Of a stretch of DNA of 64,000 nt, positions 4,401 to 61,400 are shown piece after piece (position 1 is the stretch's first letter; each line of letters begins with the position of its first letter). The stretch is taken from assembly GCA_965202585.1 (NCBI GenBank), contig OZ241832.1:30256001-30320000 (forward strand), written 5' to 3'. The DNA comes from Thalia democratica (Eukaryota). A model generated the notes under the pieces. It did no database searches. It saw only the letters and a list, made by a program, of their open reading frames with translations, and was not told the origin of the DNA. Position numbers and translations under genes: made by a program.

Positions 4401-4414
4401 CCTTTTAATAATAC

Positions 4415-16532: not shown

Positions 16533-16544
16533 CAGGGTTGCCAA
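16533..16544. mobile_element. Possible DNA-transposon terminal motif CAGGGTTGCCAA (also ~24577, ~34308)
   Basis: Resembles (C/T)AGGGTTGCCA termini of DNA transposons. I found no inverted partner. Confidence 0.3.
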
Positions 16545-31584: not shown

Positions 31585-34500
31585 TTTAATTAAAAATGAA
31601 GCATTATTGTCAATGACAATTAATTCAGAGTTAAAATAGTTGAGACAAAATGGTTGGTAAAAATACACAAGAATCACCTTCATTTGAAAAACTATTTATT
31701 TCTGCAGCTTTTTGATTTTAAACAAGGTGAAGATTTAAAAAACAAAATAGAGTTTTTACATCCTGGTTTGTTAAGATGCAGTAGAGGGTTGGCACGGATT
31801 GTTTAAATAATAAGGAACAAAAAACTTAAAACAAACAGATGGAAAAATTAAATCATAATAGAATTACTAAAGCAAAGTACAAAACATTTAATTAAATGTT
31901 TCAAAAATTGTTTGGAAAAAGCTTTATAAAAAATACAATAATAATGACACAACAGATAAAATATTAACATTTCTTCAATAATTAGTCAGCTTGGTTACAT
32001 ATTCTCATTATAAATTACTAGAATCTAATCATAGAACATAGATAAAGAACTAGACACAAGTAAAGAAAAAAAAATTCAAGAAACCCTTATAAAAAATTTT
32101 TATGGTAAAACATATTTTTCTAATACAACCATTTTATTAAACATAACTTAAATAAGCACATTTAAAACAGGACTCTAAAATGAAACTCTACAAGCAACCT
32201 CAAAACAAAAGTTAAGCGTTGAGAATTAGTTTCGACTTTATAGGAACAATATTTTATAGAAACAGAAATAAAGGTTTTTAAGTAAGTTGCTGGACATTCC
32301 AGAGTTTCTAGTGGAAATAGAAAAGTCAATAAGATTGAGGTTAAAATTTTTAATTACAACTAAAAGTAAATATACTTTGTAAACGCTATTTGGTAGATGT
32401 ATAAACCATGTGAAAGATAATCCAACGTTGAAGGTAAATTTATAAAAGATGTAGATACCTTTTATTTTAAGAAAGATGAGCGTAACGTAAAAAACAAGTG
32501 GTAAAATATCATACAAAAATGCAAAATGTTTTGACATAATTGACTTAGAAAAGGTACTTATTTTGTTTAAACATAATAGGTAAAAAATTATATTATAAGC
32601 GTTATTATACTTATCTTTGAGGGTAACAAAATCAGCATCAAAAACGAAAAAAAATAAAAAACATAGCTGACTTAAAATTTAAGAAAGTTGTTGTTATTAC
32701 TAATAGTTTCAATTTAAAATCTTTTTTAATAACTTTCAGAATCTTATTATCAGAATATTTTGGACTGCTTTCCGTTTGTAAAAGTTTTCAAGTTATGGCC
32801 CGTTATGCTTCCTTGTAACCTTGTTAGAAGTTACAATAACTCCTGTAGTTTTACGCATTTCTTAACAAGTCTTAGTTTGTGAAGTAAAAATAAACCACAT
32901 ATATTTGTGAACAAACACTTTCGACCATGAACATAAACAAAAGTAAGCTACGTTCATATCTTACTGTTAGCAATCTGCAGTCATTACTGAGAATATATAC
33001 TTCAAATTACTTTCAGATTTTTAACAGCTTGTTTAAGACTTTTATAACCCACATATGTTTCGTTCTTAAAGCTACTTTTTCAATTTTGTAAAAGAATGGA
33101 TTGTCGATCACAGATCAGAAGAAGTTAACTGAATTGTCAGAACTAAGAAGAAAAACAAATTACTGCGGTTCCAAATAGAATAGTTATTGGTAATGTGAAA
33201 CCGAGACTTTAAGAAGGTCGTGGCTGCAGTTGACATGTTTGCAGCAAAATATGATGATCACTGCAGATTCGCAACAGTTGTGTCCCGAGATAAAAACAAG
33301 TCTGGGTGAGCTTAGTGATCATAGAAGAGCAACTCAACTTTCAGTACAAAAGCTTCAAACATGGATCAAACAATAAAAAAAAGTTTGAAAAGCGTCAGCT
33401 TGATGGCTTTAAAGCTTATCTCTATGCAAAATACAGAGACCAATAAAATATGGTAAAAGAAGAAGTTGAAAGGCATCAGCTTGAAATCTATAAACAATAC
33501 ATGAAGCAAAATACAGAGACCCTGAATTGGACCCACCGACTCAAACACTGCGACAGACAATTTTAGTTGCATCTCCTAACAGATTGATATATAAGAAAAT
33601 TTCAGTGATATTTAACGATAATAATTTAGCCGGAATAACTTATCATTTTAAGTGATGTAGTAGTATTTGTTACTAATTAGTACTTTTAATTATTTAATAA
33701 TACTTAAAACTGGTGACAAATACACTTGAAGAACTTGAAATATTTTTCTTATTTTTTCTTTAATTTTTCATAAGTTGAATAAGATCTTTTTTAATAACTG
33801 AACTGTTTTTAAAAGTTGAAATAATACTTTATTCTACTTAAATAAGCCTATTTCATATTTTTGTTTTCTTTGACTGTTCTATACATATAAATTTTTTTGT
33901 GAAATACACGAGATTGCTTTAAGATGTGATTGATTTCATTTTTTCTCATTTGAACATGAAGCTTATTTTTTGAGCGGATTATTTCAGTTAAGTATAGACT
34001 CGAGTGTATTAAAACCAAAACTGTTTTACACCACAAGAGCTTATAAGCTTTTCCAACACGAAAAAAAAAACTGTCTCTAATGCAATTCAATGTGTATAAA
34101 TTTAACACACTATGTAGAGCAATGTTACAATGCAATTTAACAAGCAATATTTCAAGTGAAACAATACTTTTTTTCATGTTTTAATTTGTAAAAGAATTCC
34201 CGTTGAAAGAAGAAATTGATGCCACAAAAACTGTATTTGCTAAAAATATACAAATAAACTTTTTTTTTTCTTAAATTCGTATGTTATTAATTTGTCAGCT
34301 TGTTTTTCAGGGTTGCCAAATGTTTTTAGCAAATTTGCTCTGGGTTTTCAAAAGTACACATTTTTGGGTCTGTTTTTAGCTTAAAGCTAAGTTTAAGATG
34401 TAAAACTGATTTAAATAATATCAAAAACATTGAAAAGAAACTGTAAAACTAGTTTAAATGTGTTTTTTAATAAAAAAATGTTTGATGATGACAAAATAAT

Positions 34501-35011
34501 TTTATCTATATGTTAGATTTTTTGAGTAATTTACCATAAATAACATCACCAATAGACAATACATCATTGGAAGGGAAGTAACAGGATAATAATATATAAG
34601 ATCAGTATTTTGAGGGAAAGCAATCTGTTGTCTATTGGTGTGCTTCAGTCATTCAAACAAAACACTGTAGTCCGTGTCGAAAAAAAATTAATGGAAAGGT
34701 TTATTTGCTTTTGTTTTTTTTTTACATTGCAATGATACCTTTGTCAAACTACAAGTCTTCACTTTTAAACTGAGTTTAATTTTAGTGAATAAGATTACAA
34801 AACATGGGAAGTAGATTTTGATAATGATAGTTTAGTTTCTTTATTAGAAACTTATGAATTAAGAGACCAAGATTTTTTTTTATGTCTTCATAATTTGAGT
34901 GTGAAAACTCAAGTTGTTTGAAAACAGCAGAAGACAACATCTAACTTTATTTTAAGAAAACATTCCAAAGAAAAAACTAATTTGAAGAAGACCTATCACA
35001 ATTTAGTCATT
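31585..35011. repeat. Older, more diverged paralog of ~13778-17239
   Basis: Collinear homology throughout, with clearly more substitutions than the 8044-bp duplicate. Confidence 0.9.
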
Positions 35012-35509
35012 GCAATAATATCTCATTGCAATAGAAGAAAATTCAATTTACATTAACTGATACAAGTGAAGGTACAAAACTTCATTTTAAAATGCTTTGT
35101 TTTGGTTATCCAGTAATGTCACAACAGATAAAAAAATTTAAATTTTGGGTTGTTTGATAATTTCAAACTATCCAATGGAAAATTCAAACTACAATATTAA
35201 AAGCCTAATATATACTCTGCAGAAAACAACCTTTCAGAATTGCCCGAATTCACTAGATGAGATCTAATAAAAGAACACATAGGAAGTACAAATTCGTACA
35301 GAAATAAATGAACTATTAAATTAACTTATCTGTTTAATTACTATTAACAATATTATTCTTATTAATTTTTAAATAAAAAAGGACTTACTTAGACATCAAT
35401 AGAATTTATAACTTTTCTCAAAGGCTTTGAATAATAGGAAGCCGGACATTGAAAGCTTTTTACAACATTAATAAGTTATACAATATCTATGAAAGATACA
35501 TAAAACAAA

Positions 35510-35830
35510 AGTACAGAGATCCTTAAGTGGCCCGACCAACCTAAACTTTGCAAATTCAAAAAGAGATGGTATGCACACATTAGTGATATCAAGAATGAAA
35601 ATAACAAGGGAACAGAACTTTCCAAGTACATTTGGAGATTAAAATACAATAACACTTGCTACAATTCAAGTCGGAGCATCATGCATAAGATTATGGAAAT
35701 AAAAAATATAGGTAAATATGCAAGACTTGCAACCTGGAAAAAAATGAAAAATCACTTGCTAACAAGAAACGAGTTTTAAATAAAAGACAAGAACTCTTCT
35801 ACACCTGCCCGCACTTTAGGAAATTTTATT
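35510..35830 (+). mobile_element. GIY-YIG endonuclease C-terminal fragment of a Penelope-like element
   Basis: FKKRWYAHISDIKNENNKGTELSKYIWRLK...CKTCNLEK...LNKRQELFYTCPHFR. Confidence 0.8.
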
Positions 35831-37629
35831 TTAAACCTAGCGTTAACCTTATCATTTATTTTTGTTTTTGCTTGTTCCCTTATTTGTTAAAAGTCATTTT
35901 GTTTTGTGTTGTTATAAGCTAAATCTGTATCTGTATATAATTTTCAAAAAATGCAAAAATTATTTTTTTAGCCAATTTCGCATTTTACAAACATATATAG
36001 TAAAAATTAAAGATGGCATCACAAATCATAAAAAAATATCCTTATTTTTCTGCACAAAATAAAGCTTGAAACATCATATTCTTTATTTTGTTTGCCATGC
36101 TCTTTGGGAAGAAAGTAGCTTGGACTAAAACTGGCTTTAAGAACATTTCTTACATATCTGCAAGATGCAAAAGCTGTGAAAATTCACTGAGCCATAAAAA
36201 CAGTATGGTCTCGTCTAATTTATTAAGAGAAATACTATTAATAACTTATTAAGTCAATTTAATTTAAGATGAAGTAGAAATTTATTTATCCACTTGAAAG
36301 AGATATGGATCATTGATATGGATCATAACTTTCATATATCTTAATAAATTTTTTTGTAATAAAATGTTAAAGTAATTATATTTCTAGTTTTCTTTTTCTT
36401 TTAATGACAAACTACTGTTCAAATTTAATTTTAATATTCCTATAATTCTGAACGTTTTATTAATATTTGTTTAATATAAATCATAAATATTTTTACAAAT
36501 TTTGTGCAAGCAATAAAGGAACTAGAAAATAAAACACTGAATAACCTTGATATTATGGCTCAATATGAAGTTGTAAACAATGTTAGTTGATTTTTTTTTC
36601 TTTTCTAAAATATCTTACTCAATTTTTAAATAAATAAGGACTTATTTAAATATGAATAAAATTTATAACTTTTTTGAAAGGCCCTAAATAGCAGGACCCC
36701 AGACATTGAAAGCTTTTTACAATATCAAAAAGTTAAACATTCTTTTAAATGAACAACAGTGATACGATTATACTACAATACATATGTTGGCCTGGAATTT
36801 TTCAAACAAGTATTGGTTAGTTTTTATAGTTATTGTAAAACAAATTATATTATTATGTTAACATTATAAATTTACACAAACTCAGTTTTTTAAAAAATTT
36901 CAATATGTTTTATTATTTTTATAGTATTCACATACATAAATAAAATTTTAAATTAATATTTAAACCATTAAAATTTTAGTTTAGTGTTCTCATAGAACAC
37001 AATTAACTTTCAGAGTTTATGATAAAAATGCAAACCATCACCTTAAGTAATGCTGAAATAGAGCGAAATTTTTTGCTAGTGAACAACACAAAAATAACAG
37101 GCAATATAATATGAGCAATGATTTGTTTAACTCCTTAATGATTACTAGATATGAAAAATCATATAAGTTTTTGACTCTATGTTTTATTATATTTCTAGCT
37201 GTTTATTTCAAAGCAATGAAACTTTAACGTTTAGTTTTAAATTTCACTTTAATAAACATATTTTTAATGGAGACTTTTAGTGCTATTAGTAAAATATTTA
37301 TTAATATAATGTGTTTAAATTATGAATTTGTAAAACAATGATTTGTTTAGATATATTTGGTTTTTTATCATTTGAGTAAAAAGAAAGAAACATAGAAAGT
37401 ATTTAAATATTTTATTGCTTAGTTTATTGGTGTATGTTCAGAAAAGTTTGAAAGATTATTTCATTAATTAAATTTATTAGAAGTTTTTTATTGTTAAGCA
37501 TATCAGAAAGGGGAAAACAATCATGATCAACTCCTGATCTGATTTGCATTGATAACTTAGTAGATGCAAATGGGGTTCCAAGTACTACTGTCATTACAAT
37601 ATTAACCTAATAATTATTTATCCTTTTAA

Positions 37630-41520: not shown

Positions 41521-41599
41521 CCAAGTTACAATTTAGTGTTCACAGACTTAATTCATTTTCAGGAGTTGCCCAGTTTTTGCATGAACTTAGAAGCCACAT
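41521..41599 (-). other. Candidate non-coding exon (79 nt)
   Basis: On the - strand: catattttttAG acceptor and tgg|GTGAGT donor flank a GC-richer island. Confidence 0.5.
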
Positions 41600-42478
41600 C
41601 TAAAAAATATGCAATTTTTCAACTTTCATAGTAGAGCTAGATGCCATAAATAATTGTTTTGTTTAAAATAAATATCATAGATAAACAGATTTAAAGAATT
41701 TTAGTTTAAATATAAATAAATATTAGCTCTAATCAAGCATTTCGAGGTAAACAGATTCCAATGTATTTAATTCTAAACATAGCTGTTAAAGCATATTTCT
41801 TGGCTATATGTTTAATTTTAGCACATTTTTTAACTCTTATACTTTTTATTTTTATGCTATTTTTCCAGGTTTTTAACTAATTTAAGTTTTCATTCTTAAA
41901 ATTGCAATGAAAACTAACATTTATTCTACATATGTCATTTAACTAACACCATTACACAAAACTATCATAGCTACTTTTAAAACTTTTCTTAAAAATTTAA
42001 AATTCAACAAAAGATTATATATTTTTTTATTGAAAATCTTTCTTAATACTACTTTACACTTCTTGGTAAAATAAAATAATACCAATATTCAGTCCCAGTA
42101 AATTTTTTTTTTATCTTAGTTGACACTTAATTCATGTCTTGATTAGCAATTACTAGTAGTTGAAAAGGTATCATCATTATTTTCACAAATAAATTCATAA
42201 AAAAAAATTAATTGTAAAGATTAAAACATTGAGCTAAAATTTGCAGTAATCAGCAATATATGAGCTGTATTTTCCTTTTAAGTTTATTTCAGAAAATTTA
42301 TATTTAGAATCTAATAAGTATTTATATTTAAAATATTTGTATAAAAACTGTTAACAAATATGCTTTATCAAATCAAGTCAAATCTGAATATTCTTATTAT
42401 GTTTGTTAATTTTTGTTTTAAATTAGTAAAGTTTAAATAAAGTTCTACAAGAATCTTTAAATAAAAGTTTTAACTCAC

Positions 42479-42724
42479 CAATTGTCCCATGGAGGTAGTA
42501 GCAACTGATGTTTATGAACTGATAGCAAAATCAACTAAATTATAAGTTGAAATTTTACCATGAAATAAAGCAGCAGCTGATTGGCTAAAAGTTCAAGTTT
42601 GTTAACCTTTGACCTCGGTGATTCCATTGATAATTAGCTGCACGGATTTTTAATCAGACATTTCGCCCAACAAAGCGAGTAAGGGTTCTATGGAAAAATG
42701 TCACAAGTGTAAATGTTTGTTATG
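42479..42724 (-). other. Candidate non-coding or pseudo-exon (246 nt)
   Basis: On the - strand: acttttctttAG acceptor and ttg|GTGAGT donor. Stops occur in all three frames. Confidence 0.55.
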
Positions 42725-45700
42725 CTAAAGAAAAGTATAAAGCTACTTTTATAATAAGTTTATAAAGTCAAAAGCATATTAGTTTTTCTTTTTAGACTAA
42801 TTTTACAAATTCTATTTATAACTACATGAATTTTTGTGAACAAAACAATTTTGAAATGTTAATATTTTCTACTTTTTGATAAGTATAGTTATAGTAGTTG
42901 CTTACTACTTCATTGGTAAAAAATCGAAACAAGATCTAGTGTAACATTTTTTTGGCGAATATTAAGTTTTATTAAACTAATAACTTTAACACTATTGTGA
43001 ATACCTAATATATTACACTAGACCTGTTTATTATTATATACATTTACTTCTTATTAGATTATAATTAGTTTGTAACAAAACAATTAAAGTTGATAATTCA
43101 TATCCTCAATAATTATACGATAAAAAATAACAATATAACTAGAATTACATATAACTTTAATACATAAATAACTATATTTTATTGTTCTTTTATAACTTTG
43201 AGTTTGGATCAGCTTAAGTGAGATAACTTTATTTATAAAAACATTAATAAACTTTTTATTCTTCAAAAGTAGATAGAGTTATGAAGGCTTAAAAATAATA
43301 AGATTATTCTAAAATTATTAATTGAGATAATAGTTTAATATATCAAAATTTTAGCTTTTTTCAATTTTTGCGGTTTCCTTTTTAAAATTATTTAGGTATT
43401 GTATACTTTCATAAAAACCTTAATATAAAAACATATGAGTCGAAAATTAAAAAAAAACTTACCAAACGATTTGGCATTTTTTAAATTAAAAAAACTCCGT
43501 TAGTGGATGTTATTGAAATATGAAAGGCTAGTTAGTTTTATTACTTTTCTATAATCTTTTTTTTACAAAATATATGTCTTACATTCTTGAGAGACAATTT
43601 TTTTGCTTTATTTGTTCAAATGAAGTTACAGTTATATATATATATATATATAACAAACAGTTATTTTCTTAAAAATATGTTTTTGTCCTGGACAAGACAT
43701 TAAGAGGAATCCAATACGTACTACTCGATAACCAAAGGTTGTTCTTGCACCGGGTCCTAGGACCAAATACTTTGTGCGCTTTTTTTGTAGTTTAGTAAAC
43801 TATATCTAATTATAACTATTTAAACTTGTTTTATTAGTAAATGTAAAACACATATAGTTTCGGTTTAATTTTGTTGTTTATCCAGTGATGAAAAACTATT
43901 CCAAGTTTAGAAACAAAATCATTTTTGTTTAATCGGCCAACTTTTAAAATTCATACGTGTAAAATAACAAAATTTTTGATTAAATTGAGGTTCTAGTTTT
44001 CAATTAACACACTGAATCAAGATTTAAAAAGCTATTTATTCTAGTTTTATTTTATGTCTCTCAAAACCTTTTGTTACTAAAATCTTTTGAATGTTTCGTT
44101 TGTAAAAAAACACACTAATTATTGTTTATGTTACATCTAATAATCTCTTGCCACGGACTTTAAAGTTATAAACACAATTTTCGGTATACTTTTGAATTTT
44201 TCAATATTTTTACTTACAAGTATTTTAATAAAGCTATAGAATTTTTATATTCATCGAATTGTCAAAATATTAGTAAAATTATTTTCACTATATTGTTATA
44301 GCATTCGACATATTTAGATACCTTTTACAACTTTGTACAACAATTTTTTTGTCTATTTGATATTGTTCCTTATTGAACGAAAAAAAAAGCGCTGAAAATA
44401 TTTGGTCTTATGACGTGGTGCACAAAAAAACCTTTCGGTTATGGAGTCTTACACCACTTGGATACCTTTTAACGTATTGTCCAGGGAAATAAGTGTACTC
44501 GCTCAAAGCTTTTTAAAATCGCATCTTCGATTCTTAGTCAAAAAATTAAAGGAAGTGTAAAACAGCTTCGAATACTTAAAAGTTTTAAATTAGTCATGTC
44601 GTATTTATACAAGGTTATAAAAAAATAAGCTATTTGTATTAAAGTTTAAAACGAACAGGACTTATTGTTTTCAGTAGAGCTATCTTTCCAGATGATCGCG
44701 TGTTCAAAATGGTAAATATATTATATATTAAGTTGCAAAGGCTATTTTGATGCATTAAAATTCCTTCTGACAATATATTTTATACGGTTTTTTAGTAATT
44801 AATTGCATTTTTATTGCTAGCTTAAATTTTCCCCTAATAAAAACTACAGATTTGAACAAAATAAAGAGAGCTTTTAAACTATCAAAAGACATTAAATTAA
44901 AGTCTAGTGTTTTAACTAATGTTTAAATATAGCAAATAAGTTTAGAATGAAACTAGATTGGCATACAAGTAAAATTTTAAAACTTACAGGTTTTTATTAA
45001 GTTGAATGTAAATAAAAAAGTAAAAAAGATATATGTATTAGTTTTTACTTGTTTTAAGCAATTTAAATAGCCAGAGATTATAAAATGTATTTAGAAAAAA
45101 CACTTTATTTAAACATAAGTTAGTAACGGCATTAAAACTACTAATTTTATCTTTATCCATCAAAACACGTGTACATTTTTAACTATGAAAACACTAAAAA
45201 GTTTAACAAGTACAAAAACTTTAGATATATTTTATTATAAATAGCATTAATACTTCTAATAGTGAGTAACAAAATGCATCAACATTTTAACATCAGTTCG
45301 TTTAAAATAGTTTAGAAATTTAAGTATGGTGAGTTATTTGGTCGCCTATGAATATGTAAAATGGTAAAGGGAGAAATATATTTTAGCTTTTAGCTATTCT
45401 GCTAAAATTGTCGTTTAAACCTCAACTTTAGGTATATTACTGCAATATAACAACCTTCAGATATTTATAAAATATTTAAGCTTTTGGTTTGGTGTATAAA
45501 GTGGTTCAAAGCTTGTTCAATAATGTTATTTGTAAAAAATTCTTAAAATTAGATACGCTAAAGAAAATATTTTTTTATTTTTTACATATTACTTATTCTT
45601 GAAAAACTTATAAGCTTTAAAACTGCTGTTTAAATCATCAAATACAAGTTTGTTTATTTTGCCGAATATCTTTAAAAATCTTTTCAATTTGATAACTAAA

Positions 45701-47902
45701 AAGTAAATGACGATGAAAATATTTATTTTAAACAGTATCAATTTAACTAAAGTATTATAAACAAATAAAAAATTACTTCACTTAAATAAACCGCGTCTAA
45801 ATTCTATAAGCAAGGTTGCCACATATCTAACTGAGAAAACAGATCTAGACTTTTCTAAACTAAATTATAATTTAAACCTATTTAATCACACATAACCAAA
45901 GACTTGAAAGTTTTTAATTTATGTCAAAAACTTAATAGACCCTGAAAAAAGATGAATTGCAAAAGCATAACTTTTTAGAAAACGTCATTAGCAAAATGTC
46001 GTTTTTAGTGATGACAAACTTTTTTGATTTAAATTTCCTGAACTTTTTCGAAAACCCCCATTTTTCTCGACTTTTGTTCTTTGTTTTTCATTGGTTTGTG
46101 GCGACCATGTATAAGTCATTATTCATTAAATATTTTTAGATAGGTATCATTATATCTTTCAAAATTTAAATAAACTTTATAATTTTCTAAATTAGCTTGT
46201 AAAAAAAAATCAAAAATAATATGCTTGAAACCGAATCTTTATACTTCAAAAAACTTCAACTATTAAAACATTTACCTAGTATTTAAAAGATCAGTAAAAA
46301 TCGTATAAATTTTATAAATTATAAAAATAGTTAGACTACTTTAATATGTTTTAGACAAAACCCTTTAATTAAATATAAACACTTTCATTATAAACTTCTA
46401 ATATTTTGTATGAAAAGTCGTTTGAATTTCAAATAAATATTTTTATTTTATCAAAATGACATAATGCTCTACTTTAAAACAAGCTTTCAAAAACTTTTAA
46501 GCTTGATAAACAAAAGTTTACATCATCAAAACATATATTTTCATAATACCTTAAGTTTAAATTTCGTTTACACAAGAAACTAGTTTAAACACGAATAAAG
46601 CATCTCCGTTGTTTCGCTGTACAAATAAAAACACCTCACACGATTTAGTTCAGTTTATTTTCAACAACAACAGAAGATAGCCACACTAAAGTGGAACAAT
46701 GAAAAATTGCTAATCTTATTATTTTTATCTTTCATACAAACATATCGAGAGTGCAAACTTTCAATTTGAATACGTGCTTAACAGAGCAAACATTTGAAAT
46801 GACAATTTTTTTTTTTGACAAAATTTAATGTCATTGTTTTTAGGAGAAACAGATTGACATCGCTTTAAAACTTTCGTAAACAACAGGCACTGTCATAATA
46901 AAAAACCATTATTGTTATTCAGCAAATTTATATGAATTAGATTATTTACAAAGCTAGATTGAAAGGAGTAAAAAAAATTCTTAATTTAGACAGGACAAAA
47001 ACTTGTTAAATATTTTTGACTGAAAGGTTTTTGATTAAAAACTAAATTGTTAAGACAGTGGTTACAATGTAAGATTTATTCAGTTGTAGTTTAGCTAACA
47101 ATTTAAAACATTATCGTATTTGAAAAGGTTAATAGCTAAAAAATATAGGAGAGTTAAATTAAAATATATTATAATAAGCGTTGAAAAAATTTGAATTAAA
47201 CTTTAAATAAACAATAAAACAAAACTTTGCTTTAAGTTGCTAAAAATTTAAATGAGCTTCCAATATTTTGTAAAACATTTAAACAAAGTTGTGCTAAAAG
47301 TGCAAACTAAATGTTTGATTGCATAAAAATGATTAAGAAATGCATATAAAAATCAGATAAAAAATGTTTTGTTTCTACTTGTATGAATTTAATTTAAAAA
47401 TATTGCTGAACTTAGAAAATATTTTTCATATTAAACTGGTCAGGTAAAAACAAAAGTAGCATTTGTATACAGTAGTAAGCCAATGTACCAAAATAAAACA
47501 TTAATAACTTTTAATGTATCTTTCAAATTTAAGTTTTTCTAAACGTATGAAATTTTATACAGATGTTACAAAAACCATATTGTACTATTATGGTATATAC
47601 TGTAAAAATTTTGAAAACAAAGTAACTTGGAAAGGCACAAGTAACAACAAAAGAGCGGAAAGAAAAATGTACCAAACGTAAAGTTTTGGCAACTGTAAAA
47701 AAAATACCACACAAAATGAACAATTTTTTTTTTGTAAAAACAAGATCACAATCACCGAAAATATACCAACATTAATTAAAAAAGATCCCTAATAAAAAAA
47801 AAAGTACTATTATAATAAAAAAAGTGCAAACTGACAGTATTATTATATTATTAAAATTATATTATGTTATAATATTCATAATTATTTTTTGACAACTTAT
47901 AC

Positions 47903-48091
47903 AGTCACGTTCTTCGCAAACGCCGAAATGGTAACAGCGGTGGGAATCTGGTCAAAGTCGAAGTTTTCGTAAACCATTTCGTCGGACCTTCTGTCCGGCA
48001 TTCTCAGCTTTTCCATTCCGTAAGCGAAATTGTCATTGGCCGAATCGGACTTGTCGCTGGGAGGCGCCATGTAGCTGGAAATATAGTTACT
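47903..48091 (-). CDS. Candidate coding exon 3 (63 codons, phase 0/0) of the unknown - strand gene
   Basis: TACTAAC branch point, pyrimidine tract and cgcAG acceptor. Stop-free GC-rich frame SNYISSYMAPP...AKNVT, then act|GTATAAGT donor, or a stop at 47897 if unspliced. Confidence 0.55.
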
Positions 48092-49179
48092 CTGCGGAAA
48101 TAAAAGGGAGTTGTTAGTACATAATAAGTGTAGATGTATTAGAATATGTGTTGGAATGTGCAGTGCATGTATACAGTAAATTGGGTTGTTAGTGTATAAA
48201 AAGATGTTATTTTCTACTCTTATCAGTTTATTGATAGACAAACACGCTCAAAATAATTGGTTCTTGGACCTGGCGCAGGAAGATCGGCCATCGAGTCGCA
48301 TGCCACTTGGACACAGTTTAACGTCATTGTCCAGGACATGGCTTATCTCGATATAAGCATAGATATATCAAATTTACCTTTCTTGCTTGCAAATATTTAA
48401 ATAAAAAAAAACATCTATTTAGATATAGATTTGTAACAGGTATTTTCTTTCAAGAACAAAGGGTTTGTATCAATATACTTACTTACCTTTAAAATTAATA
48501 CAGTAAAATGTAATATGTGTATACAAAACAATCTCAAAATACAAGTGGATACAGTTTTAAAACAATATAAAACAAGTATATGTTTCATTTATGAAATGTA
48601 ATAAGTCAACTCAGTTTAGATATTATTAACTTAGTTTAAATACTTAAGTGTGCACAAAATTTTGATGTCTTGAATTTTGAAAAATAAATTAAAAATTATA
48701 CAGCCACAAACAATATGAAGTTAATATACAGTACATTGCACAACTACTTCATATTATTACCGGCTTTTTAATATTTAATTGTGGCTTTTCTTTCACATGT
48801 AAAATACAAAACACAACACACAAAATAAAGAGCTTCAATCAATTAAATATCTTTTATGACTTTGAAAACTTTTATATTGATTAACAGCTTATAATATAGC
48901 TTAAAAGTTAAGAGCGTAAATATAAAAGTAATAAAATTAATGAGGCTTGAACTTTAATAATTTATCAGCATTAAAACAATAAAATGAAGTTTATTTGTAC
49001 ATTTTTGGTATTGTAGATACATAAAAAGGTTTACAGTATTTAGAACATTACATATTATAAACAATATAATTAAGATACAAATTGTATACTTTAATTGATA
49101 ATTTATATGTTTTAAACAATTTAAAACTGAAGTAATTAGTTATTCTTTTACTTGAAAAACTGATTCTATAAATTTTAAG

Positions 49180-50850
49180 TTTTAAACATTTAAAAACCGT
49201 CATCTGTAAATTTAATTTACCATTTGTAAAGTTAAAAAATAAATATGTTTTAATTAGATTTATCACAATATAAGCTATTGGGGAAGAAGATTATGACAAT
49301 AAATATTAATTCATGTTTTCATATTGAAACACAACATTAATACTATTGTATTATTGTTATTAATTATCTATTTAAACTTTTACTATAAAACATAACACAA
49401 ATACTTTTGTATATTTTTTCATTTCAATTAAAAAAAATTTATAACTTAGACTTATGGTTTTAAACTGTATGTAACAACATACATTAAACCTATAGATAAA
49501 AGTATCTTAGAATAAACCACGTATGCAAAAAGTAAGAGAAATACATTACAATATGATAATTTCAATCATTAAAAAAAAAAAGTATTTCAATTGTTCTTCT
49601 TCTAATAAACTATGAAGGTATTAAGGCAGAAAATTATAACCTCGACACCACAAGCATTTTTGTGGAACAAACATCACTTCTGTTTGAATTTGTGTATTAA
49701 ATTTTGCAAAAATAATTGCAACTTTACTTGCAGATTTTTTATCAATCACCAAACTCACAAATTGAGCTGTTAATTGGTGGCAATTGTATTTGTTTAATTA
49801 AGTGCACAAACATAAACTTTATTGGTTATGTTGATTTAATAACATACATAACTGAAAATAAACAATTTGCTGTGCAAACACACGTATTGTGCATTCGCAA
49901 TTATTTTGCAACTAGGAATTAAAAAAAAAAATTAGTTTCACACATCATGACAGGATTGCCACTAACTGAAGAAGAAATGTCTGTGAGTGGCCAAAAACTA
50001 ACATTAGATTGTAAGAATATTTAAAGAAAAAAATTTTAGTAAGAGCTAAAAATATTTCTAATAAAAAGGCTGAAATACTTGGAAAAAAATCTCCTTTTTT
50101 AAATTAAGTTTTAAATACTTAAAATCGTCATCAGTTAATTCAATTAACCATTCGTATAATTAAAAAAAAAACCTTATTTTAATTTGACTAATTCTAAAAA
50201 ATTATTGAGGAAGGAGATTATGACAAAAAATATTTTTTTTAAAGATTTTACAATATACCATAACATAAATACTTTTGTAATTTTTTTAATTTCAAACAAA
50301 AAAAACTTGAAATAAAAACTGTATTTCAACTGTTCTTCATCTAATAAACTATGAAAACAGTGTAAGACTATTAGGCGTAAAATTTTAACCTCGACACCAC
50401 AAGCATTTTTGTGGAATTTAAATTTAAACCATTTACTTCTGTTTAATTTTGTGTATTTAATTTATTTTGCAAAAATAATTGCAACTCAACTTGCAGATTT
50501 TTAACCAATCACTAAACTCACAAAAGTAAGCTGTTAATTGGTGGAAATTGTATTTATTTAATTCAGTGTACAAACATAAACTTTATAAATAAATGTCTGA
50601 TAATGTTGATTTAACAACATGCATAACAGAAAATAAACATTTTGCTGTGCAAACACACATATAATACATTCGAAGTTTATTGTAAAAGTAAAGAATTTTA
50701 TTATGAGTATGAATTTTAGCTTCACATAACAGGATTGCCACTAACTGAACAAGAAATGTCTGTGAGTTACCAAAAACTAACATGAGATAGTGAGAATATT
50801 TAAAGAAAAAATAATGTAGTAAAAGCTAAATAAAATTATAACAAACAATA
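49180..50850. repeat. Degenerate tandem duplication (~750-900 bp units) with a weaker third copy at ~51190-51400
   Basis: Shared aacctcgacaccacaagcatttttgtggaa (~49637, ~50386) and ggattgccactaactgaa (49953, 50732). Confidence 0.85.
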
Positions 50851-53800
50851 TGAAATACTTTGAAAAAAAATTATGATAGTATAAAAGGGTTTTAATCAAA
50901 TAAATAAGCTGTAAGAAAAAAAGTAGTTTTTAAAATCATAAAAGCTAGCCTGAAACCTCGGACAAATCTATCAATTTAATTTACTTAACTTAAGGTTTGT
51001 GGTTACCCTGATAGAAATATTACCAGAAAAACAAAATACTAAAACTTTAAACACTTGACGAGGGCTAAAATATGCAGTTTTAGAAAACCTCAAAATAAAA
51101 ATTACACTCAAAAAAGTTAACATTAAAAATGTATTTTTTTGTATGCTGAACCATTTTTGCTCAACAAACTGCAATAAAATTTGCAGGTGAAACACTGAAC
51201 TTGTAAAAAATAAAGTTACTGTGGGGCAATGGTGTTAATCAAATTTGTTTAATGTGTGAAAACAAACATAAACTCTACAAATAAATGTTTAGTCTGGTAG
51301 TGTTGTTGCATTATCTTTGTGCAAACACACACGCATAGAGTGCAATGCAATTTTAAGCGTGCAGCCAAATAAAGATGATGTAATTGGTTTTACGTGTTAT
51401 ATTATATGGTTTTACAGCTACATTTTCAAGAAATTCAGCATGAAAATAATTATGACAATAGGTTTAAGCAAAGTACAATTTGAACATATAACAAGGGTTA
51501 AAATTTTTCGTTGAAAGTTATATGAAAAAATATGAGAATTTAAAGTAGAGTTAAAAAAAAAAGTTCTAAAACATCTCTGTTAAAATTTTTTTAAGTATAA
51601 AAGTGTTTTTTCAAACTGATTTAATTACACATAAAATTTAATTATAGTAGTATAACTTTAAATAATAAACTAACAAAAAATAAAAACATTAAAAGTAAAA
51701 ACATTGTTTTTAGTGAAACGTTTGCCTTAATAAATATTTCTTTTTTTTTAACACAATAGAACAGCTTAAAAAGGTAAATCAATGAAAAAGCCTCAAATAA
51801 ATGCAATTTTATTGGTTACTGATCAGGGTGTAATTCAATGAACCAAAATGTGTTTGTATACAGCAATAAAAGTTTAAACTTAAAACTTTTTCATCTTAGT
51901 ACAACATGCAATTTTATAGAGTTTTTTTTTTGCAAAAACTCCATGTTCTTTCACTGTTTGCCGGGGTTGAACTAAGTTGAAAAACTTTAAATATAATTGA
52001 AATAACTTTATTTACTCTGAGGAACTTAAAAAGTAATGTTTTTTATATGATTTTATACGAGGAACTTTTGTAACACGAGGTTTTGTAAAAAATCCAAAAG
52101 AAATAGTGAGAAACCTTTTATTTTTAAGATACTAAAACTTATACCTAGATAAAAGTAACTAGTCACGCTAAACGTGACCATTTTAAATTAATTAATATAA
52201 ATGACTCATGTTGAATCTATTTTTTATGTAATTAGTCATGACAAGCCATAAAAACATGAGTTATTACAAATAATTACTCCAACAATAAAAACTATACAAC
52301 TTGATGTGTGTTTTGAATAATAAAAAATTAAGTTGGTACTGGTCAATTTTTATTGTTAATAAATTCAATTACCCTTATACAAAAAAACAAAAACTTTATG
52401 AGTTAAGACCCATGATAAAAACTTTTAAACATAATATAAAACTGTTTTTGCAAAAAGTTCTAAAAAATTTTGTTGAGTGTTTTGTAAACCTCAGAAAATA
52501 ATACTGTTGTTATGGCTGCCAAAATATAACCTCAAGAAAAAGTACGAACAAAAGATTCACTGTCTTCTTTTTTAAGGTAAATAACAACTGTTTAAATAAA
52601 AATCACTGTAAAAACCTTTTCATATTGTAATGTATTCTATTACTAGTTACCTTACTAAATAAGTCAACTACTACTTTTTTTTGCTTAACTTTAATGTAAA
52701 TATGTAAATATCTTTAAAGTTTAATTTCACAAGTAACAAATTTTATAAAATTGACCAATAACATTATGTTTTAATAAAATTATACTGTTTGTTATAATAA
52801 ACTTTGAAAGGTATAGACAGTAACAAAACATCTGCAATTTTAACACCCAAAATAAAAACTTAAAAAATATTAACGTGTTTGATAGATACAAGTAGTAAAA
52901 ATTAAATTAAATGAAAAAAAAAATATATTTGTAAACATACAATCAAAGTTGTAACGCATTAAAATTATAATTATTTCATATACAATAAATTATTTCAAAC
53001 CACAACACCAAAGCTACACTATATCTAATTTAGAAAAATCTTCAACTTTTAAAATCAATGTTTAATCAACTTTACAAAAAATCTAACATACCTAAACACT
53101 GTGCCTAGTTTACTTATTATTTTTTTTATTAATAAGTTTTTTATTAAGTAGATTACCCACTGAAGCTTAACGTCAAATCAAAAACATATAAGAGACTTCA
53201 AATTTTTTTAAACTGTTTCAGTAGTTGAAATATGTCATAAAAAACAACGGTTATAACAACAATAGTAATAAAAAGAATTAGCGTGTTAGAACATTTAGAG
53301 CAGCAAATTTTGTTTCTAAATGTTTAAAAAATAACTAGTTACACAGATTGCTATAAAAACCGGAATTTATTAATTCAGTGGAAATCTTGTTTGTTATAAA
53401 TAATATATTATATAGGACAAAACAAAGTTGTGAATACGCAGCTTATTTTTATAACAACTGTTACTCATATAAGCAGTCAACCCTTAATTGCAAACAAAAC
53501 TGCAATATTATTGGTTTGTTTTCGGGGCGTTATTATAAACAAAAATTATTCAAATAAAATAATTTTGACTGCAGCAATAAAAACTGGTAATTATATTGAA
53601 AAGGTAAAAAAGAATCAAAATGTTTAAAATATATTTGTTTCGATTTTAAGTAAAAAACTTAAAAAAGGGTAACACAATTAAAGCAAAAATAAAATTTAAA
53701 ATTAATTAAATGAAATAAAAATTTATCACATAAAAACGTTTTAGCTACAAACTTTTAATACCTAGTTCTGTTTTAATATAACTTCTAAAAAAATTAGTCG

Positions 53801-54113
53801 ACTTTTTAAATTCTATATAAAAACATTTAATTTGAACATAATTTTTTAACAAAACAGTTTTCTAAAAGTTGTAAATTTTGAATGATATGAATAATCTTAA
53901 TTATTAAGGAATTATTATATTAAATGTAATTTGATTACAGCATTATAATTAGTTGATAAAAATATTATTTAAGTGTTTTTAAGTTTCTTAAAACGAAAAT
54001 AGGAACATAATTATTTGGAAGAGTCTCATTACAGTCATGTTTTAGGTAAAAAACAAAACTGGACAAGCAAATAACTAAGCAATAAACTGCAAGTTTCATA
54101 AATGGGAACCGCT

Positions 54114-54346
54114 CAGTTCCAACTCCCGATCATTTCCCACCCGCGCACAATTCCAACCTGACCAAATCCTAGAACTGCTCACCGACCAAGGGTAAGGGTA
54201 AGAATGATAGTAAAAAAATAAAATAATAATTAAAAATGAAGTAAAAAAGTTAAAGAAATATAAAATTAAACAAACAAAAAACGAAAATTGAAAAGAGTTT
54301 GGGTGGGAATTGTGCAAGTGGGAAATGATCGCGGCTGGGAATTGGT
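54114..54346. mobile_element. MITE-like element with ~50-bp imperfect GC-rich terminal inverted repeats and AT-rich core
   Basis: cgatcatttcccac (54127-54140) is the exact reverse complement of gtgggaaatgatcg (54318-54331); gcacaattcc pairs with ggaattgtgc. Confidence 0.75.
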
Positions 54347-56039
54347 AGTATACTTTCATTTTTAATGTTTAGTTTAATTTAAAAAAATCTTGTTTCTGTA
54401 CTATAAAAAACTACAATACTTAAAACAATGTGTTACAGTTTTAAACAATGGAAAATTTTGATTATAGAATACAACTGCTAAACTAAATAATTTTTTGTTA
54501 ACTAGAGTGTTTTTAATTGTTTAATTTATAAACTAATGTTTTAAATTTAAATAATATTACAAAATAAACATATTTTATAATAGTTACAAAGCAGCTAAAA
54601 ATAAACAAATGAACTCACAAACGAACAGTATTGTGTTTGGAAGCACAAAGAAAATGCTAAATAAACACAATGTGCGAAAAAGTAAAACAACAAGGAACAA
54701 AATACTTTCAGTTACTACTTCCTTTTAACAACATTACTTCCCTGATTAAAGTGTATAACCTTTTACGAACGAATGTTAATTTAAATTTGGAAATTCCAAA
54801 CTGAAATATAAAACAGCAGGCACGTACTGAATGTATGCAAAACATTAAAACAAACAAATAATAAAAAACAAAGTTGGGATGAACCTTTCAGTGAATACTT
54901 TCAGTAAAACAATTGTTAAATTTATCATTAATTTATTTTACTATTTTTATATCTAAACAGGTTTTTTAAAGCTAGGACAAAATTGTGTTCTTTGACTACG
55001 TGGATCAAAAAACTATTTATTGAGAAATCTGAATTTTACTAAACAAATAAGTACATATGGTTACTGAAATAAAAGTTTAATAAACTATACTTAAGATTTA
55101 TTATAATAAAATATTTATAAACTTTTTAAAATTTCTATTTTTAACATCATACTTAAAACAAAAAAAACAGACATAATTTATACTTAAAAGTTTTAATACA
55201 GAATATTAAAGGAAAATTAAAAAAGAGTAGTTGATTCAATTAAAATGTAACAGTTTAATCTAATAATAAAGTTTAATAAAAATGTGTAGGAAAGTACAAA
55301 ACTAAAAGCAGGAATTCTTTGTGCAGTGCGTGGGCTGCAGCAACAGGTTACATGCACAACAAATCAAACATGATTTACATTTTATCGTGTTTGCAATTCA
55401 GTTCTGCTAAATAACATACTTCAAATATTCCACTCGAACAAACAAAGTATTAAAACCAGTTTTGTTTATTTTCAAAGTGAAAAAAGTTGTAAACCCATAA
55501 AACATGTTTCAAACATTCTATTTAAACAAACAAAGCATCAAAACCGTTTAATTTTAAAGTGAACAAGTGAGAGTTTAGGTGCTGGATAAGATCCAAACAG
55601 AAGATTTGTTTAGTAAATGTAGTATACTGTCTTTAGGCTAGGAAGCTAATAAAACTAGTCTGTGATTATGCAGTTAAATTTTAACAACAAGTCATAAAAT
55701 TAACAGTGTTTCGCCTTATAAAGAACTCATTAGAAAGTTATCAGTGAATGTAATTATGTGCACAATAAACTGTAATAATATAATTTTATTGTAGTAAATA
55801 AATTCAGTTGTAAAAAATAGTGGTTTTAATTTTAATGCTCAAAAGGCTTTTGCACTTAAATCCTTTGTTATTTTAGTATGAGAATATAAACTGTTGTGCA
55901 CGAGACGTAGTTAATAATTAACCGAATGAACTGGTACAGAGAATCGCAACTATATTCTTAAACAACCAATAACGTAGTTATTTGTTTTCAAGTTAATTTT
56001 AAACTTAAACTTAGCATTTAATTTGATTATTAACTGACC

Positions 56040-56345
56040 GTTTTTTAACAAACTAATCAAGTAAAATTTTAATTGTTTTTAAAGTATAAAACTTCACTTT
56101 AAGTTTTTATAAAACCCAAAATAGATACTCCAAAAACTTTCTTTTGATTGTAATTTTAATTTTTAGTATTTTGTAAATAGTTGCTTTAAAATTGACTGTT
56201 TTTCAACAAATTAATCAAATAAAACTTTAAATGTTTCTAAAGTATAAAACTTCACTTTAAGTTTTTATATAACTGAAATTGAAACTCCAAAAACTTTCTT
56301 TTGAAAGTAATTTTGTTTTTTAGTATTTTGTAAATAGTTGTTTTA
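56040..56345. repeat. Two-copy tandem repeat, 158-bp period
   Basis: aaagtataaaacttcactttaagtttttat at 56081 and 56239. Confidence 0.85.
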
Positions 56346-56513
56346 ATTTTCAAGCAAACAAAAAAATACTATAACTACATTTTTACTAAGTATCAAAATA
56401 AAACATAACAGAAAAATGTACCAAAGAAATATTCCTCTATCATTGGTCCCTCAGCATAAGCAAGTACAAAAAATCAGTTACATGTTTTAGTATAAAAAAT
56501 AACAATAACTCAC

Positions 56514-56610
56514 ATTAATCCAAATGCTGAGATGAATGAAGAGAACGCCGATGAAGAAGCTTATGCTGAAGAGTGTGAAGAAGTGGAACAGTATGTGCCT
56601 CTCGTGTTGC
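56514..56610 (-). CDS. Coding exon 2 (97 nt) encoding a hydrophobic, probably transmembrane segment
   Basis: tttacAG acceptor and aat|GTGAGT donor. Joins exon 1 in frame to give ...YGLR-QHERHILFHFFTLFSISFFIGVLFIHLSIWIN. Confidence 0.7.
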
Positions 56611-58229
56611 CTGTAAATATTTGATAATAATTATGAATTAATAAACTATAATTGTTATTGTCAGAAATTAAAACTTTTAAGTTTATAAGATATATGGTTG
56701 GGAATTTACATGAGTGCTGAAAGCTTAAAAAAAGAAAACTTTTTTTTATGAATTTAGAACTCGTTGCAACTATGCAAACTACATCTATATTCAAAACTTG
56801 ATAGTTTATACATATTATTACATGAATTAACAAAAAAAAAAAAATTATTTAAATTAACAAAAAGTTTATAATTGTTTTTGTACAACCAAAAATTTACATT
56901 CGTGCTGTGAGTTCAAAAAACAGTAAACATTTTTTGAACGTGAATATTCAATTAATTAATCAACTATGTCAATATAGAATTTGTTATGAATTTGTAAAAC
57001 ACCTCATAGTTGATTATTAAGCTTATTTTAAAAGTATAACATTAAAAATATGAAAATTAAATTAAGTCAATTGTTTCAGATTAAATATTTCTGCTTTTTA
57101 AATTAACTCACATAAGACAGGAAATAAAACCTTAGTCATTAAAATCTTAAGCAAAATAAAACAAAACAAGTTAATAGGTATTAACGAAACAAACTAAATC
57201 AGAGTTTTCTAAATTTAAAGAATAAAAAAAATATTTTTTTTTTTTTATTTATCAGTTAAACGTTTATTTCGAAATTTATTTTTTCAAATTACAACAAAGT
57301 TGAACTATAACATATACATGTGCCCATTAGCAAATATTTTTACAGCTTTGTACCAATTTTTCAAACGTTGCTCTTCATACAAATTTATGTGTTTTAAATA
57401 AAGCCATCAAAAAATATTAAAAGTTTTTTTTCTTGAAAAAATTGTTTAAAATACAATACCTAAATAAAACGTACCTCTACATAATATACTTCTAAGTTAT
57501 AGAACCAATCAAACTTTTAAGTAATTTATTTAACAATTTTATAAACAAATAATTTCACCACAGACACTGTATTACAAACATTTGCACATGGTAGTCTTCC
57601 AAAAACACAGAACAATTATTTAACATTTATATTTAACTCAGTAGAAGTATAAAGACAATCTTTTTTTTTAAATAAGCATGAGTAACTAGACTGGTTTATA
57701 CCAAACAATCCTGATTTTTTGAATAAAATTGAAAGGGTTTTTATTAATTTATGATTAAATTAGTAGTGGAGAAGTGTAATTCTTAAATAGCAATTGAGCT
57801 GTAGCAATTACACAAAACTAAATGAAACAATTTAAATGAATCAATTAAAAAGTTAGTTAAAAAAATGCTAAAAGCATAAAAAATAAACTGAACTATACAT
57901 AAAAGTTAAACTAGTCTTAGCTGTCAAATAAAAAAAACTTTAAAATAGCCCATGTGAGTGATAAGCTAGAAAACTTAATTTAAAATATTCAAATAACTAC
58001 TACAAATTATATATAAGTATGATATTTTAAAAACAGTAAAAGGTGTTTTTTATTTATGTAGAAATATAAGACTAAAAAAATGAGTTATCTAACCCCCTAT
58101 GCTATCAAATTTAAACTATAAAACTTGTTCATATAAAACTTATACCTCCAACCAAACTATAAAATGACTGACTTATCCAGCCCAGTATGCTATCAATTTG
58201 AACTACAAACTTGTTTATAAAACTCATAC

Positions 58230-58414
58230 CTCAAACCGTAGTCATCGGCAGCTGCTTCTCTTGAGCCGGGCGGTTTTCTCTTTGAAGTTTCAGGGCTGCT
58301 GCATGAGTAACTGTCCTCTTTACTCGATTCACTGCTCTGGCCGCTCTCTTGCGGGACTGTTTGGTCTTCTTCACTGTTAGAAACTTGCTTTTCACTCTTG
58401 TGATTTTCGTCCAT
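58230..58414 (-). CDS. Coding part of exon 1 (exon 58230-58464) of an unknown gene; Ser/Glu-rich N-terminus
   Basis: GC-rich island with ttatttatttcAG acceptor at 58465, in-frame upstream TAG, ATG at 58414, and ag|GTATGAGT donor in phase 2 that matches exon 2. Confidence 0.7.
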
Positions 58415-61400
58415 GTGTGATGTGTCTTTCTACGATTGAAGTGAGCATTTAAGCATTAAATCTTCTGAAATAAATAATTACTTTACTTCATAATTTCCTA
58501 TTTAGTGTGTGGTTTTACAGAACTGAATCTAAACTTTCATGATGAACATTGCTAATTTTTAGTTTTCAACAATTTTATTTTGGGATAAACACTGAAATAA
58601 TTGAAAGTTTATTCAAAAGCCCTTTATTGTTTTTGATCTGCTTATTTAATAAAACTGAGAATATTTTTTATTATCATTTTAATTATGGTAAGTAAAAGTG
58701 TCCATTTATGATCTGAAACTTGCTTGATAAAACTTGAAATGGAACATTAACTGAACAACTATAGTTTTTTTTAAATTACAATAGATTTTCTGGTATGGGC
58801 AAAAAATATCCCTTTTTTAATATAAAGTTTATATAACTTAAATTAGTGCTAAGTTACATGTATAGTGTAACCATGTATGTTTTACAAAGTAATTAAACTT
58901 AAGGTAATTTTGTCCTAGAAAATTGGAATCCCATTATTATTCACAAGTATAATGTTTGTTTTGTATATACTAACTTAAAATATTTAACAACCATTCTTAA
59001 GTTATTCAATCACAAGTATTTAATAATTTTTTTTTGTCTAAGTGAAAAAATTTAACATTAAAAAAAATCTTTTTAGTAGAAAACTTTTATTCTAATAAAA
59101 CCAATGGTAAATAACCTTTTCGAATCTTAATTTAGTATTTTGAAAATAATAATGTATGCATACTTTTATTAAAAATATTATTACATATTTTTTGCATTGT
59201 TAGTAGTTTTTAAAATGTTAAAAATTTCTAAACTATTTTATGTATGGATACTAAACTTGTTATAAAAATTTTAAGGTTAATTTTCAAAACTCCTAAGAAA
59301 GGTTTTGCAAAATAATACGAACTGTAAAAGTTTTGAACAAAATAACTCGAAACAAATTATCTAGGGTTCAAAATTATATTTAAAATTGCAATGTCATATT
59401 CAAGTTTACTGAAGTACCAAGGATTTCATGATAAATGATCTTATAAAGGTGTGAAGGAAAATCTACTTTTCAAAACATAGTTATCTCTTATATTTAAATG
59501 TTCAATTTTAAATGACTTTGCAACTAAAAATTAAACTGCAAATTTTATATAAAAATATGATGAAATAATGCAGTATATGTGGGTCCTCACCACATAAAGC
59601 ATGTCACTAGAGACTTTATCTTTGATTAGTTATGATGAATTAGGAAGCAGGTATTAAGTATAATAAACAATAACACAACAGCAACAAACAACATTTAGAG
59701 TGAGAAGAAAATTTAATAGGAAAAACAATATATTCTACTGAACACATTTTAATAAAAAAAACTACTTTGTTTCAGTTTTACCCTTAAAACTAAATTACTT
59801 TTACATTTAAATAATCAACACAAACTTTGAAGAAAACAGTGTAAGTTATAATGTTAAAAATATCCAATAAATAAAGGGTAAGTAAAATTTTATATAACAA
59901 AGATATATACAAAAGGACTTGTCCTTCAAAGGGTAGAATTACTACTGAAAAATATATTTACTAAAATATTGTGTTACTCTTTATTTTTTGTATCCTTCTT
60001 ATGTCCTTTAGTTTAAGTAGCCCAGGTTTTGATTATGAGTTGTAGCATAGGACAATATACTTTCAATAAGAATGTTTAAAATGCTGTTTTGTTTTACTTC
60101 ACAATTGGCTGACAAACAACTAGTATCAGAAAAAACACTTTTAAAAAATTTGCAATGAAAACAACAAACAATAGTTTATATTTAGTTATAGGGCAGTGGT
60201 TCTCAACAATTTCAAATGCTATGTCAGTATGTTAATTGTTTTTTAAAGTTTTTTTAAGACTGATAGTTTTGATTAGTATGCTAAACATTAAAGCAGTTTC
60301 TTGTCCTCATATTATAATTATATTTCAAATTTTTAACTCATTCAAATTCTCCCTCTAACAAAGAATTGATCATGTGTCATTTCTAATTTTCCTAAACTTT
60401 GTGTGGTCTGATGACGTAGAGGTCCTAATGATGATTATAAAAACCCTTTAAGTTGAAAGTTGAAAGATTAAAACCCAGTGGTCAACACATATACAAAAAA
60501 AAAAGCTTTCAATTTACCTTAAACTAACATTACTTCATGATTAAAACTTTTTAATGCTACAAAAGTCAAAAACTTTAAAATGTCTATATTGTAATGTCCT
60601 GGTCAATAAAAAACTAAAAGTTGCAACATCTTCAGTTTTAAGTATAGTTTATTAAACAAAAAAAAATTTTTTGGTTGAAGGACCTGGGTACAAAAATACA
60701 GCTTGGTTATATCAGTTGTATACCCAAATTTAATCAAGTTATAATGAGTTGAAAAATGAAAAAAAAAACTTAACAGTCAAAATCAAACTCTAAAACAAAA
60801 AAATCTGTGAAAAATGAGACTATTAAACATTTAATAATTTCCTTAATAAACATATCCAAAAATATTAAAAAAAAAAATTATATAAAACAGTACTAACTAA
60901 CATTAAACACACATAAAATACATGTTAAAATCTAGGTTAAAAGGTAAATTTTCAATCTGATATGTTTTTAAATTTAAAATTTATCAATAATTTTAGAAAA
61001 TAGTTAAACCTTTTATATGAATGAAAAAACTTAATGTAAAATAAATTTTAAGTTTTGAAAGTATGTTTAAAAATTTGGATTTTACTTTCAACTTATTTTA
61101 ACTTATTAATAATAAAATAAAGCTATAACATTAAAAAAATAGCAAATAAAATAAAGCTGCAATATTTAAAAAATATAGTAAAATAAAGCTGTATTAAAAA
61201 AAATATGCTTAAACTAAATAAAAAGAATTTAATAAATATACCCTTTTAATCAAACCAATTAGTTTTTTAAATTTGAATAAATGTCTAAATATAAGAGTTT
61301 AACCAAAACAATATAATAATGTAAACAAGCACAAAAAACACTTAAAATAGTAAATCAGTTTTTTTTGTAAAAAATAAAAAAAAAACAATAATAATCATAA

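Follow-up and report, generated by a model that had tools for sequence, protein, structure and literature searches.

A minus-strand locus of Thalia democratica, most probably an ordinary three-exon gene for a small membrane protein, that ends short of a neighbouring repeat array

The window analysed here is a stretch of 64,000 nucleotides from the tunicate Thalia democratica (assembly GCA_965202585.1, contig OZ241832.1, positions 30,256,001 to 30,320,000), with a guanine-plus-cytosine (GC) content of ~25-30% over 64 kb and no N, in which a repeat array occupies the first ~37 kb and a series of GC-richer islands flanked by splice-site motifs follows on the minus strand. This arrangement raises the question of whether a single RNA polymerase II (Pol II) unit starts in these islands and continues antisense through the array, as had been proposed in the first-pass annotation, according to which three exons encode a short membrane protein and two further, non-coding exons lead into the array as a precursor of small RNAs. 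Our analysis leaves little doubt that the minus strand here carries an ordinary protein-coding gene, present in one copy and composed of three exons. In the proposed model, transcription would start at ~58476-58480, introns of 1.6 and 8.4 kb would be spliced out, exon 3 would be the terminal exon with its end near 46.5 kb, and the mature messenger RNA (mRNA) of ~1.9 kb would code for a product of 158 amino acids.

The minus strand indeed contains all five proposed islands (58230-58464, 56514-56610, 47903-48091, 42479-42724 and 41521-41599), with a pyrimidine run and AG ahead of each and GT behind it. The claim of five exons with canonical sites thus stands as far as the motifs are concerned, and fails in that the acceptor at 58465/58464 and the donor at 47903 are unused and the fourth island is without RNA. 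The GC content is 0.43-0.49 in exons 1-3 and 0.35-0.37 in proposed exons 4 and 5, against 0.246 on average locally. As predicted, the reading frame stays open across the joined exons 1-3, which contribute 185, 97 and 189 nucleotides from the ATG at 58414; together with a GTA codon and TAA, these give 158 codons. Exon 1 (58230..58476, with an approximate 5' end at 58476-58480) consists of a 5' untranslated region (UTR) of ~62 nucleotides, the ATG at 58414-58412 and 61 codons plus 2 nucleotides; it is followed by intron 1 (56611..58229, 1,619 nucleotides, GT..AG), the 97-nucleotide exon 2 (56514..56610), which codes for the invariant juxtamembrane segment and membrane helix (QHERHILFHFFTLFSISFFIGVLFIHLSIWIN), and intron 2 (48092..56513, 8,422 nucleotides, GT..AG). 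The terminal exon 3 (46528..48091) contains the coding sequence at 48091-47900 (64 codons), TAA at 47899-47897 and a 3'UTR of at least 1,369 nucleotides (~1.4 kb). Matched exon by exon, the gene is single copy in the 802-Mb genome, and the genome search recovered only these three exons.

Exons were searched separately and the full-length evidence was taken from database proteins. The open frame over exon 3 as a query, with scoring of exon-3 residues only, retrieved the proteins P0001 (159 amino acids) and P0002 (174 amino acids), to which a profile search added P0015 (156 amino acids; 89-93% identical exon by exon) and the unspliced fragments P0003 and P0004; the exon 1 translation matches P0015, P0001 and P0002. 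Database proteins found by this homology are encoded by four near-full-length complementary DNA (cDNA) contigs of close relatives, L001-L004, which derive from Joint Genome Institute marine metatranscriptome assemblies and are 88-98% identical to the window gene. The 1,864-nucleotide L003 aligns in three blocks, with 1-242 corresponding to 58476-58229, 240-338 to 56612-56514 and 339-1864 to 48091-46528, the third block being continuous at 88% identity, and the same three blocks are found in L001, L002 and L004. Hence, both splice junctions, 58230>56610 and 56514>48091, are confirmed with both introns missing, position 47903 is read through and exon 3 spans at least 1,564 nucleotides.

The second junction was also observed in other RNA data. 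A search with exon 3 and its flanks matched marine metatranscriptome runs X1-X3, same-organism runs X4-X6 and a DNA run of a relative, X7, and contigs of X4 (a set of 47 Mb only), X1 and X2 (RNA) and X7 (DNA) were aligned to window positions 42300-48250, an interval that includes exon 3, proposed exon 4 and the intron postulated between them. X4, X1 and X2 each yielded a contig that departs from the genome exactly at 48091, with loose letters that match, in reverse complement, the 30 nucleotides at the 3' end of exon 2, and the junction 56514>48091 is therefore real, both in the same organism and in the two metatranscriptomes. These matches further reveal that RNA of the same or a sister species occurs in marine metatranscriptomes, which, with ascidians as the only named relatives of the protein, suggests a marine, probably pelagic, tunicate as the source of the window. 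Since such a spliced contig is present and the genome contains no retrocopy, X4 is taken to be RNA-derived.

At the 5' end, the proposed acceptor at 58465/58464 was found not to be used, as it lies inside the transcript near its start. L003 and L004 are colinear with the genome for 10 nucleotides upstream of the AG, to 58476 (their positions 1-242 aligning to 58476-58229), L002 is homologous for ~14 nucleotides upstream (start ~58480), and L001 starts at 58466, at the AG. This colinearity upstream of the AG identifies exon 1 as the first exon, with a start at ~58476-58480. A hexamer TAAATA on the minus strand at 58499..58504, ~25 nucleotides upstream of the cDNA 5' ends, is a possible TATA box, judged from its sequence and the positions of those ends. 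A trans-spliced leader joined at the AG before exon 1 was considered and rejected, given that L003 and L004 follow the genome upstream of this site; this reading fails also for L002, in which the additional nucleotides resemble genomic sequence homologous to the window, preceded by a remnant of a template-switch oligonucleotide.

At the other end, the donor at 47903, through which the transcript had been proposed to leave exon 3, is likewise not used. RNA contigs and cDNAs continue unbroken through this position to 46675 and 46528, respectively, and TAA is encountered one codon later. X4 contigs tile 46675-47966 without a gap, with record 19 (47771-47966) spanning 47903 with 0 differences, and record 7 of X1 (47856-47929) spans it too. 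Consistent with the unspliced reading of the window, in which KNVTV is followed by TAA, P0002 has the C-terminus KNVTV and P0015 and P0003 have KNVTA. The lengths of L002 (1,925 nucleotides) and L003 (1,864 nucleotides) compare with 1,908 nucleotides for the three-exon model. L002, with a template-switch-like ACATGGGG at its 5' end and an A run at its 3' end, looks near full length, and since its length matches that of the three-exon model, two further exons could not be accommodated.

The homology of the L002 3'UTR extends to 46647 and is followed by 150 further nucleotides ending in the A run. Overall, the 3' ends of the cDNA and RNA contigs fall in the interval from 46675 to ~46500, in a region with a conserved AATAAA at 46659-46654 and another near 46445, and no poly(A) tail was seen in them. 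The AATAAA at 46654..46659 (minus strand) is invariant in the three aligned 3'UTRs, while L003 and L002 run 120-150 nucleotides past it, and it represents either an alternative signal or one that is not used. The true 3' end probably lies at 46.45-46.53 kb. A transcript ending at ~46.5 kb stops ~3.8 kb before "exon 4" is reached, with at least ~6 kb still separating it from the array; polyadenylation is thus judged to occur ahead of the ~40-kb mark, and the proposal of a transcript reaching the array is not borne out. As a separate observation on this region, X4 contains two contig versions of the 3'UTR (46675-47800), one identical to the window and the other ~7% different, with nearly all listed variants of the latter common to X7 DNA and many to X1, which could reflect very high heterozygosity or the presence of two closely related lineages in one sample.

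What, then, are the two remaining islands? Proposed exon 4 (42479..42724, minus strand) is an island of raised GC content that occurs once in the genome; no sign of its transcription was found, and it is not part of the gene. The bins 42499-42896, which comprise most of it, have a depth of 0 in RNA contigs of X4, X1 and X2, and the predicted junction 47903>42724 was observed in none of the RNA runs aligned to 42300-48250. Other RNA depth in this interval is due mainly to two arms of a very high-copy repeat at 43.7 and 44.4 kb, with low, patchy depth in a few further bins. Proposed exon 5 (41521..41599, minus strand), also single copy in the genome, is unsupported and lies outside the interval of the RNA alignment. 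Stops occur in all frames of both, as had been claimed, and exon 4 has no open reading frame (ORF) longer than 30 amino acids. Rfam and transfer RNA (tRNA) scans of the whole window, including exons 4 and 5, gave no match, and neither exon was recovered when metagenome and metatranscriptome contigs were scanned for exact patterns, although this negative carries little weight, because only exact matches count in such a scan and the collections may lack records of this genome. The splice-like motifs themselves are expected by chance: a loose consensus finds 161 acceptor-like and 45 donor-like sites on the window's minus strand, forming 26 pairs 50-300 nucleotides apart, as compared to a mean of 33 pairs in composition-preserving block shuffles, which amounts to no excess. 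The GC peak is real, if mild: ranked against local windows, exon 4 falls in the top 5% and exon 5 in the top 7%. In DNA of the relative (X7) at a likeness of at least 85%, the exon-4 bin is covered less than neighbouring bins and is therefore not specially conserved. On the preferred reading, "exons" 4 and 5 are intergenic sequence that is not transcribed and that matches splice sites by chance. The island around exon 4 extends over 42467-42748 and is single copy, and these searches assigned to it neither an ORF nor an RNA family nor an RNA contig.

Two other readings of the minus-strand signals have to be weighed against the three-exon gene. In the first, an unannotated gene distinct from the three-exon gene would own exons 4 and 5, either as a non-coding gene or as a minus-strand gene of which they are the 5' exons, and would be silent in the sampled RNA. 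This is very improbable, since the local GC peak at 42467-42748 (top 5%) and its single-copy nature, by which it is not simply a repeat, are all that speaks for it, and they are countered by the want of any RNA contig in three RNA data sets, of an ORF, Rfam family or tRNA, by the reduced coverage of the exon-4 bin in the DNA of the relative and, with the weakness noted above, by the failure to match either exon exactly in environmental contigs. In the second, transcription of the Pol II unit does not end with the coding exons but goes on, through splicing 47903>42724>41599 or through read-through, and traverses the array in antisense as a precursor resembling those of PIWI-interacting RNAs (piRNAs). 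Splice-like motifs for this exist, a rare or tissue-specific isoform could escape assembled contigs, and piRNA-like small RNAs are reported in an ascidian (PMC5897368). However, no run contains a joint to exon 4, whose depth is 0, every cDNA passes through the donor at 47903 and stops near 46.5 kb, three exons account wholly for the length of the mRNA, the conserved position of the stop matches the unspliced reading, AG..GT pairs occur at chance frequency, and array ORFs of at least 55 amino acids revealed no transposon domain on either strand, all of which makes such a continuation even less probable than a separate gene. It is by the same measure very unlikely that, in germline tissue outside the sampled RNA, a rare isoform or read-through product passes 46.5 kb, enters the tandem array and feeds a piRNA-like pathway. 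Splicing of exon 3 to distant coding exons, with the array as a huge intron, is rejected, as orthologue proteins and cDNAs share the stop and the genome search finds only three exons.

The locus was also compared with known small-RNA sources. The flamenco type of uni-strand piRNA cluster in Drosophila has a precursor with a Pol II promoter and spliced 5' exons, from which a long transcript runs antisense to transposon fragments. The window resembles it only in the proposed geometry, with a minus-strand promoter at a distance from a co-oriented plus-strand block. Unlike flamenco, the transcript ends ~6 kb or more before the block, the 5' exons are coding and conserved, and the block is a segmental-duplication array in which no transposon domains were detected. 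Instead of continuous transcription across the array, RNA ends at 46.5-46.7 kb and the depth is 0 at 42.5-42.9 kb within the aligned stretch 42300-48250. With genes giving rise to 3'UTR-derived piRNAs, such as traffic jam of Drosophila, the gene shares a long 3'UTR (~1.4 kb), and long 3'UTRs are common and by themselves no evidence of a piRNA source. Nothing found here ties the gene to the array. The consequence is mainly one of annotation: a normal gene has its terminal exon extended to ~46.5 kb and supplies no promoter to the neighbouring array, and any claim that the array is a source of small RNAs must therefore find its own transcript.

Several points weigh against the three-exon gene as set out here. 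All RNA evidence consists of assembled contigs, in which rare isoforms are dropped and which show neither strand, nor expression level, nor exact ends, and the exact poly(A) site was accordingly not seen. The exon 1/2 junction is known from cDNAs of relatives and not directly from same-organism reads. The X4 record carries no RNA label, its RNA nature being deduced from the spliced contig and the missing retrocopy, and the membrane orientation of the protein and the way it acts, considered below, are inferences only.

As had been proposed, one spliced Pol II unit encodes a short membrane protein. The product of 158 amino acids has an acidic, serine-rich, disordered N-terminal tail of ~60 amino acids, one membrane helix and a C-terminal tail of ~65 amino acids that ends in an N-x-S/T sequon. 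In an AlphaFold2 model of an orthologue, a single confident helix is placed at residues 55-99, with predicted local distance difference test (pLDDT) scores up to 96 (85-96 over the part encoded by exon 2) and below 50 in the tails. The helix carries the motif ERHILFHFFTLFSISF...G...IHLS.W.N, and the family motif R-x-x-E-R-H-I-L-F-H-F-F-T-L-F-S-I-S-F...G...I-H-L-S is unchanged in exon 2. Orthologues are 76-83% identical over the full length, and comparison of exon 2 with three of them revealed 2, 10 and 16 nucleotide changes with 0 amino-acid changes (100% identity); that all these changes are silent argues for purifying selection.

A profile search of 1.84 billion representatives returned 10 matches, which comprise close orthologues, fragments from marine samples and ascidian "uncharacterized proteins". 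The named kin are LOC100186744 of Phallusia mammillata (CAB3263027.1), LOC120335447 and LOC120344420 of Styela clava, and H2ZKR9 of Ciona savignyi. The ascidian members (profile expect values 2e-9 to 1e-17) are alike in their length of 134-167 amino acids, the disordered N-terminal tail, the ERHILFHFFTLFSISF...IHLS helix and a C-terminal tail with N-x-S/T sequons. They differ in being only ~30-39% identical outside the helix and in having an F-Y-Y-T-G-x-Y-F motif in the C-terminal tail, which is found neither in the window protein nor in its close orthologues. No function has been described, and no Pfam family assigned, for any of the ascidian members. With detectable kin confined to ascidians and unnamed marine samples, the family is uncharacterised and found so far only in tunicates. 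In the ten-sequence alignment, 17 columns are invariant, all in or beside the helix (R60, E63, I66-T72, F74, F78, G81, I85-S88 and N92), and the N of the terminal N-x-S/T sequon is nearly invariant. Pfam searches with the three exon translations and seven full-length members gave nothing above threshold (matches to ATG27, TatC and DUF families scored far below the cut-offs), an ESM Atlas feature search with exon 3 and P0002 gave no usable match, and a PDB sequence search found no match.

Because basic residues precede the helix and conserved glycosylation sequons follow it, the sequence suggests a single-pass protein of N-in/C-out topology, that is, a type II signal-anchor protein. That the helix, which includes two buried histidines, is so strongly conserved suggests that it may act through helix-helix contacts inside a membrane complex. 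Distant tunicate lineages have kept the helix unchanged and let the remainder of the protein diverge freely, a pattern that would point to a conserved partner inside the membrane.

The array itself (1..37150, plus strand) is built of direct segmental duplications at offsets of ~8.0, 20.4 and 28.5 kb. Self-BLAST aligned 14427-21403 with 22469-29448 at 98.5% and 1-2357 with 28465-30829 at 97.6%, and self-comparison aligned 13768-17239 with 31573-35011 at 89%. All 17 repeat pairs of at least 300 nucleotides inside the array are direct, and co-orientation within the array is therefore largely a by-product of tandem copying. Two sampled pieces of the array have further copies just before the window and are otherwise found almost only at C9:3.63-3.72 Mb, co-oriented; with this distribution over few loci, they behave as low-copy segmental duplicates and not as dispersed high-copy elements. 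The array runs past the window start (G000:C8:30255230), and the paralogous, co-oriented array of ~90 kb occupies G000:C9:3632152-3717954, where the sampled pieces are 73-86% identical as compared to 98% within the local array.

The statement that the proposed transcript would be antisense to every recognised fragment was not reproduced: a Pfam search of the ORFs of at least 55 amino acids in 1-41.5 kb (89 plus, 68 minus) detected no transposon domain on either strand, a size limit under which shorter or frameshifted pieces would escape. Weak Pfam matches in array ORFs were BACK on the plus strand and DUF2165 on the minus strand. The longest array ORF (27694-28305, plus strand, 204 amino acids), of which a copy lies at 19653-20129, has the BACK match at its C-terminus (expect value 0.0012; 19.4 bits against a cut-off of 20.9). 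A word search retrieved no relatives of this ORF, which may derive from a BTB/BACK gene that has decayed. A plus-strand A>T skew (+0.05 to +0.16) covers 1-40000 and 46000-62000 and is ~0 at 41-45 kb, and over the gene this skew fits T-rich introns on the transcribed strand.

Between the end of the gene and the array, 43680-43798 and 44370-44492 form the inverted arms of the very high-copy repeat mentioned above, with 65 nucleotides at 75% and 35 nucleotides at 80% complementarity, ~570 nucleotides apart. Their summed depth in X7 DNA contigs is 77,000-438,000 against ~140 for single-copy sequence, they are abundant in the RNA runs too, and they look like two head-to-head copies of an element resembling a short interspersed nuclear element or a miniature inverted-repeat transposable element (SINE/MITE). 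Two further GC-richer islands were noted, one at 53963-54339 inside intron 2, which is in none of the cDNA contigs, and one at 62449-63165 with an open frame of 114 amino acids that has a repetitive ...HLQ..TC... pattern.

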